This document shows, in pieces, positions 3,830 through 45,709 of a stretch of 52,669 nt of DNA. Position 1 is the first letter of the stretch. Each line of letters opens with the position of its first letter. The DNA lies in contig JALMLS010000445.1 in the NCBI GenBank assembly GCA_038496445.1, positions 1-52,669 of the forward strand, in the 5' to 3' direction. The notes under the pieces were generated by a model, which saw only the letters and a list, made by a program, of their open reading frames with translations, was not told the DNA's origin and searched no databases. The stretch is from Trichosphaerium sp. ATCC 40318. Lineage: Eukaryota > Protista > Tubulinea. The position numbers were made by a program, and so were the translations under genes.

Positions 3830-6800
3830 ATGTCTGAACAAAAACAACATACAGAAGAAACGCTATCGTTAGAAGGTTAGTAACAAGAAACATGATATTT
3901 TCACGTGTGCATTTAACAGTTCCAATGTAGACGAATTGGCGATACTTCGCAGACAATACGAAAGTATTACAACACGTGCGCTTACTCTTAACATGGCTTT
4001 TAATATCTTGTGACAATCTGTAGTAAATGACCTAAACAGCAGATTATGTAACGAAAAGTTTGATGAGACAATTCTATTGTACTCAGGTATGTACAATACG
4101 CTCATACAATATAAAACTGTATTTTAGCCCAACATGGTCTGGCTATTATTACAACACTGTGTATACATAAGGGTACCAACCTTGAATATACAAACAGTGA
4201 TGGACGGACAGCTATGCATCTTGCAGGTGACTTACTATATCGTTGTCAATACCCTTTTTGTTGTCAATGTACATTTGATGTAACTTGTACCTCTAGCATG
4301 TAATGGACACATTAAAGTTGTTGAAATATTACTTAATTCAAATGCAGATATTGAAGCAAAAGACAATGATGGATACACACCTCTCCATCGTGCAGGTACT
4401 TGAGTCTATTTAGTGTCCAAATGTTGTAATTTGTAATTCGTAGCACGTCATGGACACATTAAAGTTGTTGATATATTACTTGGTTCAAATGCAGATATTA
4501 AAATAAAAAATAACAATGGATGGACAGCTCTCCATCACGCTGGTACCTTGTTGTAAAGAAATGGATAGCTGTAACCACACTTCTTAGCACGTGATGGCCA
4601 TAGTAAAGTTGTTGAAATATTACTTGAATCAAACGCAGATATAGAAGCAAGGGGTATAGATGGGTGGACACCTCTACATCATGCCGGTACCTCTGTTGTC
4701 AAGAAATGGTAGATGTAACTCACACTTCTTAGCACGTGATGGCCATAGTAAAGTTGTTAAAATATTACTTGATTCAAATGCAGATATCGAAGCAAAAAAT
4801 AACAAAGGATGGACAGCTCTTCTCTTTGCAGGTACCTTACTGTTAATATATATATAATAACTTATATCTAACTTGTTTCTTAGCACGTAATGGACACAGT
4901 AAAGTTGTAGAAGTATTACTTGGTCAAAGAGTAAATATTGAAGCAAGGGGTATATATGGGTGGACACCTCTTCATCATGCCGGTACCATTTTGTTGTCAA
5001 GAAATGATAGATGTAACTCACACTTCTTAGCACGTGATGGCCATAGTAAAGTTGTTGAAATATTACTTGGTTCAAATGCAGACATCGAAGCAAAAAATAA
5101 CAATGGTGGGACAGCTCTCTTCTTAGCAGGTACCTTACTGTTAATATACTTGATGTAACTTGTGTTTCTTAGCACGTAATGGGCACATTAAAGTTGTAGA
5201 AATATTACTTGGCTCTAGTGCAAATATTGAAGTAAAGAATAACAATGGATTGACAGCTCTCCACCTTTCAGGTACCCATTTGTCAAAATTATGCAATTGT
5301 TGTAACCTTTCTTAGCATATTATGGGCATAATTCTGTTCTTGTTAGGTTATTGAAAATGAGTAAAGCCATTTCACTATCTACAAATATATGGCACAATAA
5401 GATGCTATTTAATAGGATAGTAATAGGTGTTGTTGATAATGATTCCTCATTCATTGCTGTATTTGAAACTGTGTTGACAGTTATGCTAAATGGCAAGCAA
5501 TCTAGCACTCTATGGCTATCTTGTGCAACAATGGAAGAAAGGCCACAATGGAGACTCAATCTTGCAAAATGGTTGCAATACTTGGTATGTCATTTCATTT
5601 TCAAAGAGTTTGTAAAACTAATTGTAATCATAACAGCCAACACGATCTTATTTTAAACTTGCATTACAAAAAGGGATTTGTTATTTAATATGTACATATG
5701 ATCGCATAGTTGTACAATCTTCGGTACGGCAGTCTTTCATCTCTGACTTTCAAATAACAGCTTTTTTTTAAAAGAGTTTCTGGATTCAGCACGGGGAATT
5801 AATGGAGGGACTATTATTCGACTTACCTGAGGATATGTGGATCAATCCAAAACACCCCAGTTGCATTGAGATATGTAAAAAAGAAGGATGGTGTACAAAC
5901 TCACTTAAAATAGCCAAGCAAAATCGTAGGATAATTTATACAATGCATTCTTTTTAAGTTACTATCTAGTCTTGCTGTGCTATGACTGTAACAAAAGAGG
6001 AGTCGCTTTATGTCAGTATTGTGCCGGTGAACATAACCCAAACCATGTAATTTATGTGCTAGAGTTGGTTATTAACTTTCTTCTAGAAACTTAGAAAATG
6101 GTCATTTGCTAAGCCTGCGTGTGAGTGCCAGGGTTGTGAACACAGTATTAATCCTACTTCTGTAAATCTTGTACTTGGTAACACACTTGCAGGTACAGCT
6201 CACCTTTCAATAGTGTCACACTAACACGCTGAAACTCAAGGATTAAAAAGTGAAACCTTCTGGGACTTAAATCCAAGATTACAGTATGCGCACTACTGGA
6301 ATAGATCTAACATTAAGTCAGTGTTCTTTCACAATTGTTTTGTCTAACTTTTATCGCAAGGGGTGCTGTTGAAAAAGCAACAGATTATAGAACGTTGAAT
6401 CTGTTTGATGACAACACTGTGGCCAAGAGAGAACTTGAGTTTCTTCATCAACAACTATCAAAAATGCCTGGATATGATAGAGTCACTGTTGTAGAAGCAC
6501 TTCTTGTATGCAATGATGTCTTGACTCGTAACTTTGGGATGTACAATACAATAGTGAAACACAGACATCAGTACGTTTAACAACAAGTTTCTATTAACTC
6601 AACAGAGCTTACTCTTGACTCAACGCCAATACAACTTACAGGTTCTTTATAAACAAGAGCTTACACTACTATTTAGAGAACTTCCAAAGTTATTTTGTAA
6701 AGACGAATGGAAACAAGACAGTCATAAGAGAGCAGTGGCTGTGAGGTTTAACGCTCTGATTAATGACAACAGCCCAAGTACAAACACTTTAGAACAGGTA

Positions 6801-16329: not shown

Positions 16330-17746
16330 TGCCAAGTATTGCAACCATTTCGCAAGATTGTCTCCATTGTGGTGTTTTGTTCAGTGTTGCGTATTTTAAC
16401 CATAACGTACTAGAAAGCTTACCATCTGGGAATAATGTCAACACAGTTTCAAATACAGCAACAAATGAAGAATCATTAGCAATAACACGCAGTATCTGAA
16501 CAACTATCTTTTGCCATCTTATTGTGCCATATTTTTGCAGATAGTGAAATATCTTTACTACATTTCAATAAAGTAACAACAACAGAATTATGTCCATAAT
16601 ATGCTAAAAACGTTACAGTAATTGTATTGACAACCATAAAGTACCTGCGCAATGCAGAGCTGTACATCCATTTTTGTCTTTGGCTTCAGTATCTGCATTT
16701 GAACCTAGCAACATTTCTACAACTTTATTGTGACCTTGATGCGCTAGAGGTAAAAGTTACATAGTTTGCAGTGACAACAGTAAGGCGCCTGCACGATAGA
16801 GAACTGTCCAGCCATTTTTAGACTTTACTTCTACATCAGCACTTGCTCCAAGTAATAATTCAACAACTCTACTATGTCCTTGATGTGCTAGAGGTAAAAG
16901 TTAATACAAGTGCGATACCATCGTGTACCTGCACGGTGAAGAGGTGTCCTTCTTTGTCTTTAGCTTCAATATCTGCATTTGATCCAAGTAGCAATTTAAC
17001 AACTTTACTTTGTCCATGATGTGCTAGGAGGCAGTAAAAACAAATGTATTACCAACAATAGCTACCTGCAACATGAAGAGGTGTCCATCCATTTCTATTT
17101 TTTGTGTCAATATTTGCGTTTGATCCAAGTAATATTTTAACAACTTTAGTGTCCATGACGCGCTATAGGTACAAATTACAATAATTGACTGATAACAATG
17201 ATAAGGTACCTGCACGATGAAGAACTGTACATCCAAAATGATCTTTTGCTTCAATATTTGCTGTTGACCTAAGTATTTTGACAACTTTACTATGTCCATA
17301 ACGTGCTTGAAATACAAATTAAAAAAAGAATACTCTGACAACAAGCTACCTGCACAATATAGAGGTGTCCATCCATCACTGTTTGTATATTCAAAGTTTG
17401 CACCCTTATGTATACACATTGTTGTAATAATGGCCAGGCCATGCTGCGCTAAAATCAAGTTGATATTCACATGTGGTTCGATACATGCCTGCATGCAATA
17501 GTATTGTGTCAGCTGACTCTTCTTCACATAAGCTGCTATTTAGCTCGTCTACTACAGGTTGTCTCAACAACAATACAAACATATAAGAGGTATCCGCACT
17601 CGTTGTAATTCTCTCGTATTTTTTGCTCAGTATCGCCAATTCATCTACATTGGAACTGTTAAATAGCGCGCGCGAAAATATCATGTTTCTTGTTACTAAC
17701 CTTCTAACAATAGCGTTTCTTCTGCAGTGCGTCTTTCTTCAAACAT
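16330..17746 (-). pseudogene. Diverged N-terminal paralog of the ANK-UBR-ART gene (about 6 ankyrin exons plus helical domain, no UBR/ART)
   Basis: MFEERRTAEETLLLE start exon, NVDELAILSKKYERITT, HKGANFEYTNSDGWTPLYCA, further ankyrin exons, YYGHNSVVVTLLK...QWR..LAKWLQYL. Small indels present. Homology to copy A stops at ~16330. Confidence 0.7.
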
Positions 17747-32689: not shown

Positions 32690-33992
32690 ATGAGTAGTAT
32701 TGTGCTCCACAACTAATGTTATGAGTAGTCAGAATCATCAGAAGACTCAATATCGGCAGAAAACAACAAACAGGATTTATTGGCAAAAGTGCTCGTTGTC
32801 GGTTCGCGCTTTTACAACTTGTATGGTTACAACACAAGACACTAACGGTGAAACGTAGGTGATGTAGCCACGGGTAAAACTTCAATTATCAGTCGCTTCG
32901 CGCATGGCATTTTCTCCCACAGCTACAAGGCTACTGTAAGTACAATCTAACAGATTTTTCCGTTTTGTCACTTTAAACTCTTAAAAACCGTCAAAAGCAC
33001 TTGAAAAGGAAGAGAGATACAGAAATACAACGTGGAGTGCATTCAACTCACGTCGAAATTTGCTAGTAACATCAAAATGAACTCTTTTTTTTTTCTTTTT
33101 TTTCTTCGGCTGACGCTCTTTTAGATCGGCGTTGACTTTGCTTGGAAACCTGTCATTGTTGATGGCACCACTGTGAGGCTTCAACTATGGGTACAATTTA
33201 ATTTTTTTTAAAAGTCACGTGATTTTTATTAATGTTATTCTTAGGATATTGCAGGTTCGTTTTTTATCGTTTTATAATGGAAGTGAGTACGTATTAACAA
33301 AAGAATATTGCAGGACAGGAGCGATTTGGACACATGACAAGGGTACGTTGTCAAGGAGCTTTTTTGATTTTACAATAAAAAAGTTGATTTTCTTCACGAC
33401 TTGCTTCGCGCCCTACAGTTTGTTTTGGCTAGATTTATATTGAATTAATTATTTGATATTTGTAGGTGTACTATAAGAATTCATTGGGTGCTATGGTAGT
33501 ATGTGACGTTACAAGATTTTCAACTTTCGAAGCAGCATCAAAATGGCTTGAAGATTTAAAAGTCAAAGTGTTCTTCCCTGGTACTGAAGATCCTATTCCT
33601 ACCATACTTCTATTAAACAAGGTACATTAAACCATATTTTTCTTTTATTAAATGCGAAACATCACGTGTAGCTCTGTACGGAGAAACACTGACAAACTGT
33701 TTAGATTGACTTGAAAGAAAAAAGCGCTTTCACTAAAAGTAACTCTGAAATGGAACGTTATTGTCAAGAACATGGATTTCTCACATGGTTTGAGACATCC
33801 GCAAAGGATGATATCAATGTTACAGAATCTGCAGAATACTTAGTTAAAGCAGTAGTAAAGAAAGTAAAAGAAGTCCCAGAGAAAAAGAGTGAGGAAGAAT
33901 CAGATTCTGAAGAAGATCATATAGTTTTAGAAGAAAGAAAATCATCAAGTCCTGTAGCTCAACAAGAAGAGGAAAGCAAGTGCAAATGTTAA
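32690..33992 (+). CDS. Rab32/38/29-family small GTPase
   Basis: KVLVV|GDVATGKTS, YKAT|IGVDF, LQLW|DIA|GQERFGHMTR|VYY (WDIAGQE is diagnostic of the Rab32 group; DIA is a 10-nt micro-exon at 33245-33254), LLLNK|ID, WFETSAK, C-terminal CKC prenylation motif. Start codon choice tentative. Confidence 0.9.
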
Positions 33993-34082: not shown

Positions 34083-35206
34083 TTATAATATTTTCCATCA
34101 GCTAAGCAAGATGACATGACAATAAGAATATACACGTGGTACTTACAAAAAGTGCTTAATGCGTTTGTAAATCAGTTCAAAATGCGTTTTTGGTTACCTG
34201 TAATAAACCTTGAAGATACAGTAATGTCCCTTTAAAAATAGACCACCAGGTACAAAGTTGTTTTGCGCAAACTTTGAGCCGTTGACTGTTACTCGCTTTT
34301 TTTGCCAATCGATATGGATGCCTCAACAGAGCAACCGTTGGTGTTTCGAATGCTGAATGAATCTAACTTCGGAGCTTCACAATTTTCTTTCCACCTGATG
34401 AGCGATACCTTGGAAGAGGTAACAAAATTTAATACAATCTCGCCTTCTAAAGTCACAATCAACAGTTATTGTTGTATTCTCACTGAATATAAGCTCCTCC
34501 TGATCCCAAGGTAAAATCACCTGAAATACAACACTGTTAGTGTTGCTAAAATTATACCTCTGTGTACCTCTAACTACCAGCTTATCTTCAAGGACACGTG
34601 TGTCTATTACAACCAAATCTTTTTGAACAACAACAATATCTCCATCACAAAAGCTGTCATCAAACACTTCCATTATGCAACCAAATCCAACGTTATCAAT
34701 ACTTCCCTAGTTATACAAGTATTAACAGGTAAAAGGCCTAGTGATAAATAATGTATGTTGAAGATGCGGACTGGATCATGGAAGGCACCAATATAGCAAT
34801 CTGAAAGTGTTGGCAAATTATTAGAAGTCTTATTAAAGCGAAACACTCTGTCAGAGATTAAATATTTCGTTGTCGCATTTGATATCCAAGAACGTGTAAA
34901 CGCCACTAAAACCTTCATAACAAATAAGCATAGATCTCTTGAGTTATACGGTTGAAATTTTCAACAAGCGATCACTTAGTTTGGGTAGTACGAACCTGTC
35001 TACTCACCCATTCATCCGAAGGGCAAAGCGTCTCCTGGACGGTTGCCACAACCAGCATACTTATTAGCGAACACTGTGTCAATCTTACAATCATTTTTAG
35101 ATTGAAAATATACCTTCTGGAACATTGTAATGCAATTGACTATGTAAGGGGATAGGCTGGAAACATGGAAAATACAATGTAGATTCAAAACAAAAATGAA
35201 CATCAA
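34083..35206 (-). CDS. Possible multi-exon hypothetical gene or relic
   Basis: Alternation of exon-like blocks (ORFs 34377-34673, 35012-35221) with GT/GC..AG intron-like stretches. No continuous model or domain recognised. Confidence 0.3.
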
Positions 35207-36144
35207 ATTAAGAACAAGCACAAGATAGTGCTAATTACATAAATAATCAAAAAACCAACTGCTAGCATTACAATGCAAACAAAATAACACCAACAATCCA
35301 TAAGTATTGTGCGATGATATTCTGCAATTAATTGACCGTTAATATCCCACTGTTTGCTCCATTCACATGTGCCATACCTGTTCATAATTACACATCTAAT
35401 TTGACCGTCACTGTACCATATCTTGTGCTCTCCATGCGGTTTACTTTTAATACAGCTGTATTTTGCTTCTAATTGGCCATTTCTGTGCCATGCTTTATAC
35501 TCTCCTTCCAGCTCCCCATCAACACGACAGTATTCCATGCGCAGCTGTCCATTATCATGCCACCCTTTGAACTCTCCTTCTTGTTTGCCTTTGATGTAAT
35601 AACAATGCATGGTTATTTTGCCATTATCATAAAAACACTTGTATTCTCCTTCAAGAAAACCATCTATGTAGTAACAATGCTGCTGTAAATGATCATTAAA
35701 TTGATTCCACTCTTTGTACTCCCCATGAAGCACATCATGTTTGAAACTACACTCAGCCTAACATATTTTAGTCACAAGAAATAAAGATCACGTGAACACA
35801 GGAAGTCAAAAAGGCAATATTATTTCGCAGCTGCGTTTATGGCCTTAAGTTGAAGTCATTGGTGCTATCACTAGATTGGCGTTTGTAATTTTTTGCTATT
35901 TTACCTTACGATTGTAGTGGATAGAGTACTTATTTCGCTTACTGTCGTAGTAATACAATATTTTGTTTTTTATCCACTTTCCATGTTTTTTTAGTTCATC
36001 GTCAAACCTTGTGGTTGTTGCCGTGTATTTTGATAGAAGAGGCCATTGTACATAAACTGCAAAGTCTAAATCAACTATATCAAGTTGTAGCTCAAGCGGA
36101 AGGTTCAACAGGTGACAATACTTTGATTTCAAAGCACTCATCAT
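35203..36144 (-). CDS. F-box-like / MORN-variant repeat protein with C-terminal membrane anchor
   Basis: Exon 1 HLLNLPLELQLDIVDLDFAVYVQWPLL...HYNRK|gt. Acceptor ttag|GCTGAG at ~35757. Five repeats such as YIDGFLEGEYKCFYDNG. Hydrophobic tail CWCYFVCIVMLAVGFLIIYVISTILCLFLI*. Confidence 0.8.
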
Positions 36145-37033: not shown

Positions 37034-40000
37034 TTAAAGACTTGTACTTGTGTTGTCGTTAATAATGGTAACTGTATCTCTTAGCACAGGATGAAGTGTT
37101 CTCAAGTAAGCAACAACATCATCACGTGTTCCTTCATTTAAAACAAAATCATGTCCGTTACAAGCATGACGTACAAACCAATCATGACACATCATTTCTA
37201 TAATCTCTCCTTCCATGTGCATTGTGTATTCTAGTATCTGTAAAAAGACATCAAGGCATTCAACACCACATTGATGTTTTACAAAGCCTGATAAAACATA
37301 TCCTTTCATTCTTTCGATTTGGTACTTATCACTTAACTTGTAAAGCATCCATAGAGTATCTATATCGTTTAAGGGAATGCTGTCTTTGTATAGATAATCC
37401 AATAAAAGGTTGACGACACCGAGAGGTTCACCAATTTTGATGACATTAGCATTCTTATCTGTTGAGTGATTTGATACCAGAATTTGTTCAAAGAACGGTA
37501 TGCGTGCTACTAAGATAACCTAAAACAATACAATCAGTTATTATATTACAATAGTACGAGCAATCACAGTATTGGCGCTAGATAAAAAGAAAACTCGGAA
37601 AAGTAAACAAACAAAGAAAAAAAAGTTGCAAAAAAAAAAAATGTACCTTGTGACACTTCAGTTCGTTGTCATCACTAGTCTTTAGAATTAAATCCTTTGA
37701 TTCTTCATGCTTGTATAGTCTCTTTAAAGATCTTTTGATACCCTTCGAATTGATAAAGTAGCATCCAGGTTTGGTCCTTTGGATTTCTTTTACGAGCTTA
37801 TTCGTTTTAAGTGATTGTAACAGTTTTATAAATGAAGGTTCGTCATCGTATTGAACTGATTTGCCATAAATACAAGAAATAAGACAATCGAACGCTCTAG
37901 AAGAATGGTCAAGCTTCAGGATGGAATCTTTTTCTCCAGCGTCTACAAACAGCTCAGGCACTTGGCTCTCCACGAATACCTAAAAAAAAGTAAGTTACAC
38001 AATTCCATATTTTGCTTTTTTCTTACCCTGCTGATCTTAAGCGATGACTCTTGGTTTAGTTCGAACTCAAAGTCATTAAGCACTTCATATTTATCTCCTC
38101 TGAGCCTACTAAACTCTGATGGAATGATAGTAGCATCACTTAAATCAGGAAACAAGTACGACTTAAATGACTTTCCAAATCGAGTATCAGGCTTCCCTTT
38201 ACTCTCCTCAGTGTCCTCTTTCAAAAATGTGAGTATTTACATAAAATTAGTACTAGTGAGGTACCTCCACGTCTTGTCTTATAAGCAATTTTCTCAATTA
38301 TGCGAACCAAGGGAAAGTGCAAATCGAACTCTGTTAGCGTGCCGCAAATGAACATTACATTGTATCTTCCTTTATTAATAGTCTTTTTCAAATCTTCAAT
38401 GATGTGTAAGACAATTTCATCAACATCAGATGAACCTTCAATAAAAATAAGCAAACAAAGTTATAGGCATTGATTGAACAACTGATATCGATCAAAAGAA
38501 AGAAAAAAATAGGAATATTCTTGTATTGAAGTCTAAGGGTCCACAATCAAATTAAATTTTCCTTTTTGTTTAATTTATGGGATCAATAAGGCATGTTTTT
38601 AACGTACCTTTGTAGTGTGGAAACATTTTTTGGAATTTAACGAAGTTCTCAGGCATTAACTTTTTGAGAAGATCATATTTTGATAAAGCTACAATGACGC
38701 TGGCATGTGCTAACCCTTTACTGCTAATTTGTTCTGAGAGTAAAAGTTTTGCTTTTTCGTATGAATTTGTTTGTGAATCTTCACACAACAAGTACATGAA
38801 GCTTGAGAGTTAAAGACAAAACAAAAAAAGAAATTCCAATAAAAATACAAGTCACAACACGAAACAACTATGGATTAGTGTCTTGTCTATGCCTTACTTG
38901 AATTCAAAAAAGATACTCGGTTAGTGACACCACATGGCAAATATAATGTACATTTCCAAAGCAATGTAACCATTTTCTCCATTCATTTCGATGACCTTAA
39001 TAAATAAAAACTTAGACCAACTGCAAAAAATAACAAAAGTAGCATAAGCCTTCAACAATGCCACAGCTTATAATAAAAAACTCTAATTTTAATAAACAAA
39101 TACTAAAAGAAAAGTATTATTGAGTACAAAGTAACACGTGATAAGCCTGAGCAACAAATACTTTTAAAACTAAAAAAGACGTACCACCAACATCCAAAAG
39201 ATTAAACTGTTGACCATTAAGGCCTAGGTACTCTTTTTCTACAACCCCTGTTGTCCATATACGTACATTCATAATTTCAGGTATTGTTACTTCCCATCCT
39301 TTAGTTCTTTTTGCAACAGCGTTCAATAAACTTAAAAGAAAAAGGTTAGTAAGAAAGTTCATTTTGTATTCTATTATCAGCTTGTATATCAACGTACATA
39401 GATAAATTATGCATAAGGCTATTGTACACAAGAGATTCTTTAAATGCAGTACATTCATCCATGAAGTCTGAATTGACGAGCCTGTAAAAAATACTATTAA
39501 CTTCTTTCTCAGAAAATTCTTTTTTTTTCTCCTTTCACGTACTTTTTAACAGCATCAAAACAAGATTGCTCCGAGTCGAAATTATAATTGCAATTACACT
39601 TAGGATCGTCTGGATCCGATAGACTCAAAATAAGGGATTGAGTGCTCTAGTTAATTAATTAAACCAAATCAAATACCAGATCTTTAGCAAGTAAGCCGTG
39701 CCTTCTTGCAACGACTAAAATAAGGACTTCGTTTAAATTCCTGTAAGCAATACCATATATGATGTGTAATACCGAAGTTGTAATCTCGTCGGGCTTCTAC
39801 ATCTTCTTGAAGCAATTGTACGCAAAAATGCTTAACAAACGTAGATTTGCCTATTTACGTGACTAAATAAGCTAATAACCGCTTTTATTTCGTGCTAACC
39901 GCTGAATGCCGATCCTGGTGTTTATTAGTTTCAAATTAAATAACTGACGGTGTTTGATACGCCTACCAAGTACTAGAATCGTGATTTCGTCTATCTCTAG

Positions 40001-40093
40001 TTTTTTCGCTTCAATTGCAGCTTTTTTGATAGATTTCAGTTTACTAGCCTTATCCAGCCTGTCTACCGCTTGCTTACATTTTTTGTTACCCAT
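37034..40093 (-). CDS. Atypical heterotrimeric G-protein alpha subunit fused to two BTB/POZ domains
   Basis: MGNKKC. P-loop ILVL|GSAFS|GKST (15-nt micro-exon). VRIWTTGV. LDVG|GHRNEWRKWLHCF. EDSQTNSY. LSKYD. FICGT. In-frame splice KTRRG|EDTEE (38264-38218) into BTB1 (DLSDATII...AFDCLISCIY) and BTB2 (KDLILKTSDDNELKCHK|VILVARIPFF...LLDYLY...LYKLSDKYQI). Apparent indels in helical-domain exons. Confidence 0.78.
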
Positions 40094-41582: not shown

Positions 41583-44500
41583 TTACTTTTTACTCTCAAG
41601 CGTAGCAATTCGAGCAAGAAGCTCAGCAATTTCTGTATCTTTTTCTTCTAGTCTTGCATCTTTTTCCTTGATTTTATTTGATAATACTTGTACTTGTAAA
41701 TCATGTGCACTCAGTTGTTTTGGCTTGTTCAAACTTGTAGCTCCCCATAATTGTCTGTACATGTAAGTAAGGAACAAAGTAAAATGGTATCAGCATGTGT
41801 ACCTGTTTTTGAACAAGTTCTCTTCATCGTCTGACAACTCATCATTATCTGAGTCTGCTTCATGTTCTACATCAGTGACATCAGTTGATGTTTTGGTTGC
41901 TTGTGTTTTATTTTTTGGTTTACTCTTTTTTGATTTGGATGTTTTACGTTTGTGCTTTACAACTTTTATTATGTATCGTGCTACAGCTTGAACGTCTAAT
42001 ATGATAACATTAGTATCGGAATAAACAGTGGAATACCTTGTGCCACAACCAACTCATCACGCATTGCCTTATTGACTTTGTCTTCGGCAACAACAATACC
42101 TTTCTTGTCTACAAGTGTGTAGTGACTCTGGTATCCTGGTTTTATTGGTTTACCATAAAAGTTATCATCATCATTAGGCTTTTCTGTAACCTATTACTGC
42201 CAGTAAATAAATAAAATAGCAAAGTCGTTTGTACAGGATATACATTTCCAGGAGTGACTAGACTTAAAACAAGAGTCACTTCTCCATTTCCTGATGTATC
42301 ATATGAGCAAGCATATTCAAGGCTACTCTAAAAACAATACAGGTTAAGAATAAGTTTGAGACGTAGTTTCACATACAGTAAAGTAGATGCCTTGACCATA
42401 ATACCCGCCATCTAAAGAACTCACAGTACCAAATCCAGCTTTTACAATACTCAAAGCGGCTTCAGGAGATGTACCATGAACCATCAATAAAACTGGTGAC
42501 TGAAAACGTGTAAGATGATTAATGTTGAATATTATTACCTGTTCTAAAGTGGAGCTGTTGTTGTTGATTAGAGATTCAAACCTAGCTGCTACAGCTCTCT
42601 TATGACTGTCTTGCTGCCATTCGTCTTTACAAAATAACTTTGGAAGTTCTCTAAATAGTAGTGTAAGCTCCATTTGTTTATAAAGAAACCTGTTAGCGTA
42701 CTGATGTCTGTGTTTCACTATTATATTGTACATCCCAAAGTTACAAGTCAAGACATCATTGCATACAAGAAGTGCTTTTACAACAGTTACTTTATCATAT
42801 CCAGGCATTTTTGATAGTTGTTGATGAAGAAACTCAAGTTCTCTCTTGGCGACAGTGTTGTCATCAAACAGATTTAACGTTCTATAATCTGTTGCTTTCC
42901 CAACAGCCCTGTTTAAAGCGTAAGCTTGCTAGAAAATTATGGAATACTAAACTGACATATTATTAGATCTATCCCAATGATGAGCATACTGTAATCTTGG
43001 ATTTAAGTCCCAGAAGGTTTCACTTTTTAATCCTTGAGTTTCAGCGTGTTAGTATGACACTGTCAAAAGGTGAGCACATACCTGCAAGTGATTTACCAAG
43101 TACAAGATTTACAGAGGTAGGATTAATACCATGTTTGCAATTTTGGCATTCGCACACAAAGGTAACATTTTGTAATTTTTTAAATTTCTATCAATACCTG
43201 TTAATAAACTCAACTAGTACAGAAATTACATGGTTTTGGATATGCTCATCAGCGCAATACTGGCACAAAATCACTGCATCAGAGCTACATGTATAGCACA
43301 CTGAGACTAGATGGAACTTAAGTTGACGTGTTGTAGTACCAAGTTAAAAGAAGTTGCATTGTTTTTGGTACCATCTTGTTTGGATACTTTAAGTGAGTTT
43401 GTACACCATCCTTCTTTTTTACATATCTTAATACAGCTGGTTTGTTTTGGATTGACCCACATATTTTCAGGTAGGTCAAATAGTATGCCTTCCATTAATT
43501 CTCCATGCTCAAACCAAAAGGTCTTTAAAAACAGCTCGTTATTTGAATGTCACAAAATGAACAGTGTCGTACTGAAGATTGTACAACTATGCGATCATAT
43601 GTACATATTAAATAACAAATACCTTTTTGTAATGCAAGTTTAAAATAAGATCGTGTTGGCTGTTGTAATAACAATCAGTTTACAAGCTCTGTGAAAAAAG
43701 AAAGGGCATACCAAGTATTGCAACCATTTTGCAAGATTGAGTCTCCATTGTGGCACTTTGTTCAAAGCGCAAGATAGCCATAGTTGGCGGGATCGTTTAC
43801 CATTTGGGAATACTGTCAAGACAGTTTCAAATACAGAAATGAACAAGGAATCATTATCAACAACACCCAATAGTATCTTTTTAAATATTGTTTGTTGCCA
43901 TACATTTGTATCCAGTGAAATGGCTTTACTCATTTTCAACAACGTAACAACAACAGAACTATAGCCAAAGTACGCTAGGAATGTTACACACTCGTGTGTC
44001 AACAATAAGGTAGCATCATACCTGCATGCTGCAAAGCTGTCCATCCTTCGTTGTCTTTTGCTTCAATATCTGCGTTAGAACCAAGTAATATTTCAACAAC
44101 TTTACTACGCCCACCACGTGCTAAGAAATATAAGTTACAACAAGTTGTACATAAATAGACAACAGTAACACCTGCATAATGGAGAGCTGTCCATCCTTTA
44201 ACATTTTTTGCTTCTATATCTGCATTGAAACCAAGCAATTTTTTAGCAGCTTTACTCCTTCCATTACGTGCTAAAAGACTGGTTTATATTTTGGTGTAAC
44301 AGCAATAAGGTACCTGCAATATGGAGAGCTGTACATTCATTTTTATTTTTAGCTTCAATATCAGCGTTTGATCTAAGCAATATTTCAATAACATGAATGT
44401 GTCCTTTGCTGGCTAAAAAAATATAAGTTACATCAAGTTGTAGCAGTGACAACAGGTTAGTACATGCAAAATGGAGAGGTGTCCATCCTCCCTCATCTTT

Positions 44501-45709
44501 TGCTTCTATATTTGCGTTTGAACCAAGTAACATTTCAACAACCCTACTCTGTCCGAAATTTGCTAAGTTTACAATTATTATACATTGAGTGACACCAAGT
44601 TGTACCTGCATGATGGAGAGCTGTAGCTTCTTCGTTGTCTTTTGCTTCAATACCTGCGTTTGAACCAAATAATACTTCAATGACTTTAATGCGTCCATCA
44701 TTTGCTATAGGCCAAGTTACATCAATTGTACATTGACAACAATAAGGGTACCTGCAACATGGAGAGCTGTCCATCCAGAGTTGTCTTTTGCTTCAATATC
44801 TGCGTTTGAACCAAGTAATACTTCAGCAACTTTACTATGTCCATTTTGTGCTAGTACAAGTTCAATAATTTAAGATTGCTAATAAAGGTACATGAAAGAT
44901 GGAGAGCTGTCCATGCTTTGTTATTTTTTGCCGCAATATCAGTTTTTGAACTGATTAATACTTCAGCAACTTTGCTATGCCCACTCTTTGCTAGAAGAAG
45001 TTACAATAATTTTAAACTGACAACTATAAAGTACCTGCATGGTGGAGAGCTGTCCATCCAGAGTTGTCTTTTGCTTCAATGTCTGCGTTAGAATCAAGTA
45101 ATAATTCAACAACTTCTCTGTCCATCATATGCTAAGTTGTCAATAATTATACATTGACTGACACCAATTTGTACCTGCACGATGCAGAGCTGTCCATCCA
45201 TTTTTAGACTTTACTTCAATATTTACACCTAAACCAAGCAATGTTTCGACGACTTCACAATGTCCTTGATGTGCTAGAGGTACAAGTTACAATTGTATAT
45301 TGATAACAATATAGGTACCTGCACAATGGAGAGGTGTCCATCCTCCATTATCCATATATTCAAAGTTTGCGCCCTTTTGTACACAAATTGTTACAATAAT
45401 AGGCATACCATTCTGTGCTAAAATCCAGTTACATTCACTCGTGGTCAGATGTATACCTGCAAACAATAAAATTGTGTCGCCGAATTGTGTTTTACACAAT
45501 CTGCTGTTTAGCTCCTTTACTACAGATTGTCAAACATCTTAAAAACCATGGTAAGATTAAGCGCACCCGTTGTAATACTTTCATATCGTCCCCTCAGTAT
45601 TGCCAATTCGTCTGCATAACTGTTAAATAGAGCACGTGAAAATATCCTGTTCTTGTTACTAACCTTCTAACGTTAACGCTTCTTCTGTACTTTGTTTTTG
45701 TTCAGACAT
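41583..45709 (-). CDS. Ankyrin / UBR-type zinc finger / PARP-family ADP-ribosyltransferase / coiled-coil protein (copy C)
   Basis: MSEQKQSTEEALTLE start. About 10 ankyrin exons (44022-45420). Zn finger VCYTCSSDAVILCQYCADEHIQNH...FVCECQNC. HGTSPEAA, GQGIYFT, EYACSY, CDELVV. Coiled coil ending ATLESKK*. Confidence 0.85.

Follow-up and report, generated by a model that had tools for sequence, protein, structure and literature searches.

A predicted G-alpha–BTB fusion gene with a substituted catalytic glutamine in Trichosphaerium sp. ATCC 40318

A G-alpha sequence that runs into a BTB module

We analysed a stretch of 52,669 nucleotides (nt) from Trichosphaerium sp. ATCC 40318 (contig JALMLS010000445.1), hereafter called the window. 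Between positions 40093 and 37034 of this stretch, the minus strand very probably encodes a G-alpha–BTB architecture, i.e. a heterotrimeric-type G-protein alpha subunit followed by a BTB module. The reading that we favour, with somewhat better than even confidence, is that of one gene encoding a divergent G-alpha that lacks the catalytic glutamine and runs into a BTB module, in a protein of about 665–681 residues. The gene model was assembled from chained short open frames. It comprises 13 exons separated by twelve GT-AG introns, no other intron ends being used, and counts 665 codons if an intron of 78 nt is placed in the helical region or 681 codons if this intron is of 30 nt. The disputed 30-nt segment excepted, the introns measure 47–189 nt. 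The window is AT-rich eukaryotic DNA with very short introns and a guanine-plus-cytosine (GC) fraction of 0.36. Within the gene, the GC fraction is 0.23–0.35 for introns versus 0.30–0.47 for the exons longer than 15 nt, and it reaches 0.60 in a microexon of 15 nt. Exons 6 to 13, about 560 codons, contain zero stops and zero frameshifts. The neighbouring genes lie well apart: a MORN-repeat-like open reading frame (ORF) is found below 36150, and above 42340 there is an ankyrin/PARP-like gene. The locus is thus a discrete unit. All features of the gene described below are on the minus strand.

The G-alpha part

The G-alpha part spans the first 329–345 residues, approximately, and comprises, besides an N-terminal helix, the helical and Ras-like domains. 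The G1 to G5 motifs are present in their canonical order, and the G-domain features listed in an initial annotation of this DNA (the MG start, GSAFSGKST, RIWTTG, DVGGH, a Trp at the switch-II Arg, and SKYD) could all be read in the sequence. Exon 1 (39967–40093) starts at the first ATG of its ORF (40093). It encodes MGNKKCKQ..., with Gly2 in a myristoylation-type MG start and Cys6, then the N-terminal helix, and ends with ..ILVL and the first base of a Gly codon at the donor G/GTAGGC. The microexon, exon 2 (39900–39914), encodes the residues S-A-F-S in the middle of the P-loop; it is bordered by CACCAG on its 5' side and GTTAGC on its 3' side, and its flanking introns measure 52 and 49 nt. Exon 3 (39773–39850) continues with (G)KSTFVKHFCVQLLQEDVEARRDYNF. 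The microexon restores the exact GxxxxGKS spacing, and the P-loop read across exons 1–3, GSAFSGKST, fits the pattern GxxxxGK[ST] with an Ala at the equivalent of Ras Gly12. A model in which the microexon is skipped was rejected because the P-loop spacing is then destroyed.

Exon 7 (39185–39330) carries switch I, RIWTTG, which fits RxxTxG with the Arg finger and the Mg-binding Thr kept, and the DVGG of G3. The catalytic Gln that should follow is replaced by His in exon 8 (38917–38995), so that G3 reads DVGGH, with its Asp and both Gly kept. The same exon encodes switch II as RNEWRKWLHCF, where a Trp stands at the switch-II Arg. Exon 9 (38608–38801; DFMYLLCED...) has SKYD at G4; Lys and Asp are those of NKxD, and Asn has become Ser. 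In exon 10 (38265–38435), G5 reads ICGT for TCAT, with Cys and Thr kept and Ala changed to Gly, and the last G-alpha helix follows. The spacing from KST to RIWTTG is 104–120 residues, depending on the gene model chosen for the ambiguous helical exons. About 130 residues separate these motifs in G-alpha-i1.

The identity of this part was supported by profile and feature searches. The Pfam G-alpha profile (PF00503) matches exon 9 with an E-value of 5.9e-8 (32.7 bits, profile positions 222–280) and exon 8 with an E-value of 6.8e-5 (22.6 bits, profile positions 193–216). The curated cutoff of this profile is 48.8 bits, and the scans were made here with single exons, each of which stays below it. 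Exons 8 and 9 are consecutive exons that match the profile at consecutive positions. With exon 9 as the query, 21 of the 30 nearest matches by ESM Atlas features were G-alpha clusters. The remaining exons of the G-alpha part gave no Pfam or NCBIfam match, and this includes the helical region in its two candidate frames. Sequence searches of the PDB with exons 9, 7 and 12 returned nothing usable; taken singly, the G-alpha exons were too divergent for phmmer to retrieve G-alphas.

By comparison with G-alpha-i1 and Ras, the phosphate- and Mg-holding residues are kept and the catalytic Gln is lost. Because of this loss, of the Ala at the Gly12 equivalent and of the changed Asn of NKxD and Ala of TCAT, the sequence points to GTP hydrolysis that is slow or absent, and possibly to a weaker affinity for the nucleotide. 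Both options of the initial annotation, a constitutively active (GTP-locked) protein and a pseudo-GTPase indifferent to the nucleotide, are conceivable from the sequence.

The junction between the G-alpha and BTB parts

Exon 10 ends with ..KIAYKTRRG (RIIEKIAYKTRRG and one further base), close to the usual end of a G-alpha. A GT donor is found at 38264, and the first AG downstream (38219–38218) resumes the frame as EDTEESKGK..., which then stays open to the TAA stop at 37036–37034. The predicted phase-1 intron (38218–38264) would thus join the G-alpha to the BTB part. Its GT-AG ends and the in-frame junction KTRRG/EDTEE are those given in the initial annotation, but its length is 47 nt and not 46. 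Only 7 nt separate the opening of the BTB ORF from the proposed acceptor downstream of it, and the first in-frame Met of the BTB part is residue 562 of the 665-aa model. For these two reasons the BTB exons are not translatable alone, in agreement with the earlier claim that they have no ATG of their own. If the exons are spliced in this way, the last G-alpha helix is followed by about 335 residues. The free C-terminus through which G-alpha subunits couple to receptors would be replaced by this extension, in line with the receptor-uncoupled state proposed initially.

The BTB part

A linker and the N-terminal portion of a region with weak likeness to BTB (..DFEFELNQESSLKISR) lie in exon 11 (38027–38217), which has no Pfam match. 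Exon 12 (37647–37979) encodes the remainder of this region, another linker and the first strands of a second domain, BTB2 (..NELKCHK). The core of BTB2 and the helices that follow it, which resemble the 3-box and BACK regions of SPOP, are in exon 13 (37034–37519), which ends with the stop codon.

BTB2 is securely identified as a genuine BTB domain. The Pfam BTB profile matches exon 13 with an E-value of 1.7e-6 and 28.6 bits versus a cutoff of 20.5. Local phmmer comparisons with tandem-BTB and kelch-BTB proteins gave E-values of about 1e-12 to 1e-14 (for a database of four sequences), in alignments that cross the exon 12/13 junction. The top PDB sequence match of exon 13 is the BTB domain of KBTBD4 (E 0.05). 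Two relatives, the tandem-BTB proteins P0001 and P0002, carry the Pfam domain BACK_BPM_SPOP. An AlphaFold model of exon 13, built from a four-sequence alignment, is of medium confidence (predicted local distance difference test score, pLDDT, of 63), with helices at residues 69–142 (pLDDT 62–78). Nearly all of its top structural matches are to BTB proteins (SPOP, KEAP1, KLHL11), whose BTB domains superpose with a root mean square deviation (rmsd) of 2.5–3 Å over about 80 residues. Against the BTB/3-box/BACK part of SPOP (residues 209–363), residues 1–157 of the exon align with a middling Z-score of 5.8 and an rmsd of 6.8 Å; Foldseek gave a probability of about 0.9 and an E-value of 0.1 for the SPOP-type match. 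The ESM Atlas features agree with the BTB identity of exon 13, as they do with the G-alpha identity of exon 9. From the sequence and structural matches of exon 13, an SPOP-like BTB followed by BACK-like helices is a reasonable prediction. The BACK-like tail noted initially is a candidate, predicted in a medium-confidence model whose best matches are the BTB, 3-box and BACK of SPOP.

The two halves of the BTB part share an intron position. The sequence DFEFELNQESSLKISR^VFVESQVPELF of the first region lines up with DLILKTSDDNELKCHK^VILVARIPFF of BTB2, and both are interrupted by a phase-0 intron at the equivalent position, KISR^VFVES (37980/37979) and KCHK^VILVA (37647/37646), before V-[FI]-[VL]. 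This shared position suggests that the BTB region may have arisen by an internal duplication later than the intron.

RNA evidence and a U12-like intron

A single public RNA-type run (X1) matches part of the sequence, with 9% of the sampled words. A 602-nt contig of this run, about 98% identical, joins 37647 to 37519, with exact removal of the last intron (127 nt, GT-AG, 37520–37646). A close relative of the gene is therefore transcribed and spliced. Over the BTB exons, the X1 contigs differ from the gene by 4 synonymous and 4 non-synonymous changes. A second contig of 251 nt, 94% identical, covers exon 9 and, unspliced, 79 nt at the 3' end of the U12-like intron that precedes it; it could be unspliced RNA, DNA or a paralog. 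The last intron is the one that the X1 contigs confirm, and the helical region is not covered by them.

The intron between exons 8 and 9 (38802–38916, 115 nt) is U12-like. U12-type introns of Physarum have been described with a GTATCYTT donor and TTTGA at 9–12 nt from the intron end (bioRxiv 10.1101/2020.10.12.336362), and the signals seen here match this pattern: the donor is GTATCTTT, and TTTAA has its last A at –9 relative to an AG end. On both strands of the whole window, the U12-type donor RTATCYTT was counted 23 times versus 9.45 expected, and none of 100 shuffles reached 23; the count is one of motif occurrences, which are candidate splice sites only.

Alternatives to an intact fused gene

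Several observations weigh against the reading of an intact gene that encodes the fusion, and they are considered here together with the explanations that they favour. An exhaustive profile search with exon 13 against 1.84 billion representatives returned four weak BTB matches, with no self match and none associated with a G-alpha. At the G-alpha/BTB junction (38265/38217), none of the contigs of X1, the one RNA-type run with matches, provides coverage. The RNA check that had been proposed at 38264/38218 thus gave confirmation for the last intron, but not for the junction.

The gene could produce a free G-alpha of conventional length, the BTB exons being 3' untranslated sequence or part of a separate transcript. 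Two routes would lead to such a product. If the junction intron is retained, the protein ends with ..RRGGTSLVLILCKYSHF-stop (..KTRRGGTSLVLILCKYSHF-stop) and the frame closes at 38221. Furthermore, the acceptor is a tandem AG/AG (38216–38219, minus strand). Its first AG gives the fusion frame, and its second, 2 nt further on, gives ..KTRRGGH-stop and a free G-alpha. With either route the protein would stop close to the usual G-alpha terminus, and the contigs of the one run with matches do not reach the junction. We nevertheless regard this explanation as highly improbable. The three BTB exons keep a frame of 336 codons that opens at the acceptor and has no start codon of its own. Their introns are proper ones, one of them confirmed by RNA. 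For untranslated sequence, all these features would be senseless. The first AG after the branch region is the one that yields the fusion. For a gene that encodes the fusion, the tandem acceptor could possibly act as a switch between free G-alpha and fusion products.

The helical domain raises another difficulty. The frame of exon 3 (frame A, KSTFVKHFCVQLLQEDVEARRDYNF...) hits a stop at 39688, and further downstream the coding frame is shifted by +1 relative to frame A. A candidate GT-AG intron of 58 nt (39715–39772), with a pyrimidine tract, the acceptor CCTTATTTTAG ending in TAG and a GC fraction of 0.29, removes this shift; left unspliced, the sequence has a +1 frameshift here. Exon 4 (39677–39714; VVARRHGLLAKDL) belongs to the helical domain and is followed by an in-frame, AT-rich GT..AG segment of 30 nt (39647–39676) with two stop codons and a GC fraction of 0.20. 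This segment would either be spliced out by itself as a mini-intron or form the first part of a 78-nt intron that ends at 39599. Exon 5 (..CNCNYNFDSEQSCFDAVKK) is accordingly 39543–39646 or only 39598–39543; the GC fraction of 39646–39599, 0.44, is exon-like. Exon 6 (39398–39481; LVNSDFMDECTAFKESLVYNSLMHNLS) is also part of the helical domain. The indels suspected in this region by the initial annotation need thus not be errors, since the 58-nt intron together with that of 30 or 78 nt would remove them, but a real +1 shift may be present. As many as 3,491 combinations of GT-AG introns keep the frame open over 39850–39543 when introns of at least 28 nt are allowed. An intron of 30 nt would be shorter than the introns of about 41–51 nt implied by the spacing of ankyrin repeats elsewhere in the window. 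Moreover, the text read through the 58-nt 'intron' into exon 4 (..IIYGIAYRNLNEVLILVVARRHGLL) looks similar to helix A of a G-alpha such as G-alpha-i1. Helix-A-like text at this place would mean that there is a real +1 frameshift, possibly near 39770. The shift site has no homopolymer, which argues against a simple assembly error. Two other solutions were tried and rejected: an intron of 32 or 39 nt at 39772/39753 runs into stops, and no donor phase fits the acceptor TTTTGAG/TCT (39624/39623).

These features are those expected of a recently disabled copy of a G-alpha–BTB gene, with a +1 frameshift near 39765–39775 and a stop-bearing segment at 39676–39647, from which no full-length protein would be made. 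The changes in exon 9 relative to its nearest transcribed relative, 8 non-synonymous for 3 synonymous, also look neutral or unconstrained, and from these small numbers the G domain looks weakly constrained. Such a pseudogene is in our opinion distinctly unlikely. The 58-nt intron that cancels the shift is well formed, and the 30-nt segment, although below the other intron sizes, begins and ends like a GT-AG intron, is divisible by three in length and has the low GC fraction given above. The other 560 codons or so and eight introns are intact, and for the 3' exons there is a near-identical transcript that is spliced.

The last difficulty concerns the BTB part. Of the two BTB domains claimed at first, only the second is secure. 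With the Pfam BTB profile, the first BTB-like region reached an E-value of 0.062 in exon 12 and had no match in exon 11, and its scores with a local BTB profile and with hhalign stay within those of shuffled controls. A single-sequence AlphaFold model of exon 12 was unusable (pLDDT 48). As for BTB2, the alignment with KBTBD4 places H-S-T opposite L-K-E of the phi-x-E motif, the contact with cullin-3 (Cul3). With H-S-T in place of phi-x-E, the sequence of BTB2 gives no backing for the recruitment of Cul3, and the Cul3-adaptor role advanced in the initial annotation is retained here as an inference only. The fusion may be real and its BTB part be a device for dimerisation or oligomerisation only, clustering a GTPase-dead G-alpha scaffold at membranes without any role as a Cul3 adaptor. 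Many BTB proteins do not bind Cul3, and the degenerate state of the first region is consistent with this explanation, which we consider somewhat unlikely while taking it seriously. Against it, the best structural and sequence neighbours of BTB2 (SPOP, KBTBD4, KEAP1, KLHL11) are Cul3 adaptors, and SPOP-type 3-box/BACK-like helices are predicted after it. Also against it, RhoBTB proteins use their first and divergent BTB domain for Cul3, and the weak BTB-like region has, by eye, A-G-E at about the position of the phi-x-E motif.

Possible mode of action

If one gene encodes the fusion, as we favour, the following scheme can be proposed. The G domain probably binds guanine nucleotide, with slow hydrolysis or none. 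The C-terminal extension should block receptor coupling, because some 335 residues replace the free C-terminus of the G-alpha. Tethered to the membrane, the G domain would then serve to bind the partners of a G-alpha, such as G-beta-gamma, RGS proteins or effectors. The BTB module would dimerise the protein and/or recruit a Cul3 ligase, and the bound partners could in this way be clustered or ubiquitinated. A bolder proposal, which we judge rather unlikely, is that this gene belongs to a multi-copy family of membrane-anchored, GTPase-dead G-alpha–BTB modules that would form a new class of G-protein-linked E3 substrate receptors and deliver G-beta-gamma or other partners to Cul3; the tandem acceptor could switch between free G-alpha and fusion at this locus.

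Comparison with known systems

The closest known layout is that of RhoBTB (RhoBTB1–3, and RacA of Dictyostelium), in which BTB domains likewise come after an N-terminal, atypical and hydrolysis-deficient GTPase, and the C-terminal region is helical. RhoBTB clusters were among the nearest in the Atlas searches with exon 13 (rank 2 for the features, and row 3, RhoBTB3, for the shape). However, the GTPase encoded here is of the heterotrimeric type: it has a helical domain, its N-terminus is of a lipidation type, and it matches G-alpha and not Ras or Rho. In addition, RhoBTB has tandem BTB domains, whereas only one BTB domain is secure here. The convergence on the RhoBTB design put forward initially fairly describes the layout, and the likeness is meant at that level, not as sequence homology. 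The Cul3 adaptors of the SPOP/BPM and KLHL/KBTBD types are the best sequence and structural matches of BTB2 and its helices. They differ in having a MATH domain or kelch repeats, in place of which an N-terminal G-alpha is found here, and their phi-x-E motif is not conserved in BTB2.

In animals, KCTD5 with Cul3 ubiquitinates G-beta-gamma (PMC10348674, PMC11047111). This is also a case of a BTB protein that brings a component of heterotrimeric G proteins to Cul3, and by analogy the G-alpha–BTB protein could reach G-beta-gamma via its switch II and N-terminal helix. KCTD5, in contrast, is a pentamer with a KCTD-type BTB and binds G-beta-gamma by its own C-terminal domain, while here the fused G-alpha would be the binding element. 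G-alpha is thought to derive from the ARF-family group. ARF-family GTPases have been fused repeatedly, and in a lineage-specific manner, to domains of the ubiquitin system (BTB, F-box) in protists (bioRxiv 10.1101/2020.10.31.363457); these are small ARF-like GTPases and not G-alphas. The XLG proteins of plants also combine a G-alpha-like domain with degenerate catalytic residues and an extra domain, but their extension is N-terminal and cysteine-rich, unlike the C-terminal BTB described here.

In a literature search, no paper was found that pairs G-alpha with BTB. A G-alpha–BTB protein is mentioned neither in the above survey of the ARF family (bioRxiv 10.1101/2020.10.31.363457) nor in a pan-eukaryote survey of signalling by G-protein-coupled receptors (PMC3971589). 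The latter survey does not mention BTB at all. The Physarum genome paper lists 26 G-alpha subunits, and BTB is unmentioned in its text or supplements. An exact 25-mer of the spliced junction found nothing in metagenome contigs, and neither did a protein search of such contigs. The Atlas neighbours, which were obtained with single-exon queries, are plain G-alpha or plain BTB clusters. The architecture is a new variant of the GTPase–BTB theme, with a layout undescribed in the literature found. In GTPase–BTB fusions (RhoBTB, some proteins of the ARF-like type), a nucleotide switch is coupled to ubiquitin ligases. Besides these fusions and KCTD5, a G-alpha–BTB protein would be a third, independent route linking G proteins and BTB ligases. 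If real, the fusion would be a natural heterotrimeric G-alpha that is unable to couple to receptors via its C-terminus, and if functional, it offers testable material on the reuse of pseudo-GTPases as recognition modules and on the turnover of G proteins in a lineage whose signalling genes are expanded.

Other features of the window

Ankyrin repeats recur every 140–150 nt, with about one 33-residue repeat per exon, at 4371–4958 (plus strand), 44046–45343 (minus strand) and 16669–17090 (minus strand); this spacing implies introns of about 41–51 nt. The array at 44–45 kb lies upstream of an ORF (42344–42808) that resembles an ADP-ribosyltransferase. The MORN-repeat-like ORF (35203–36144, minus strand) consists of GEYK..W..NGQL repeat units with a hydrophobic tail at its end, and the ORF upstream of it contains an F-box-like LPLELQLDIV. 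A Rab-like small GTPase gene is found at about 32780–33992 (plus strand), with several short exons and a CKC end. Two DIAG/NIAGQERF-like segments lie near each other in it (at about 33260 and 33310); they may represent exons that are duplicated or used alternatively.

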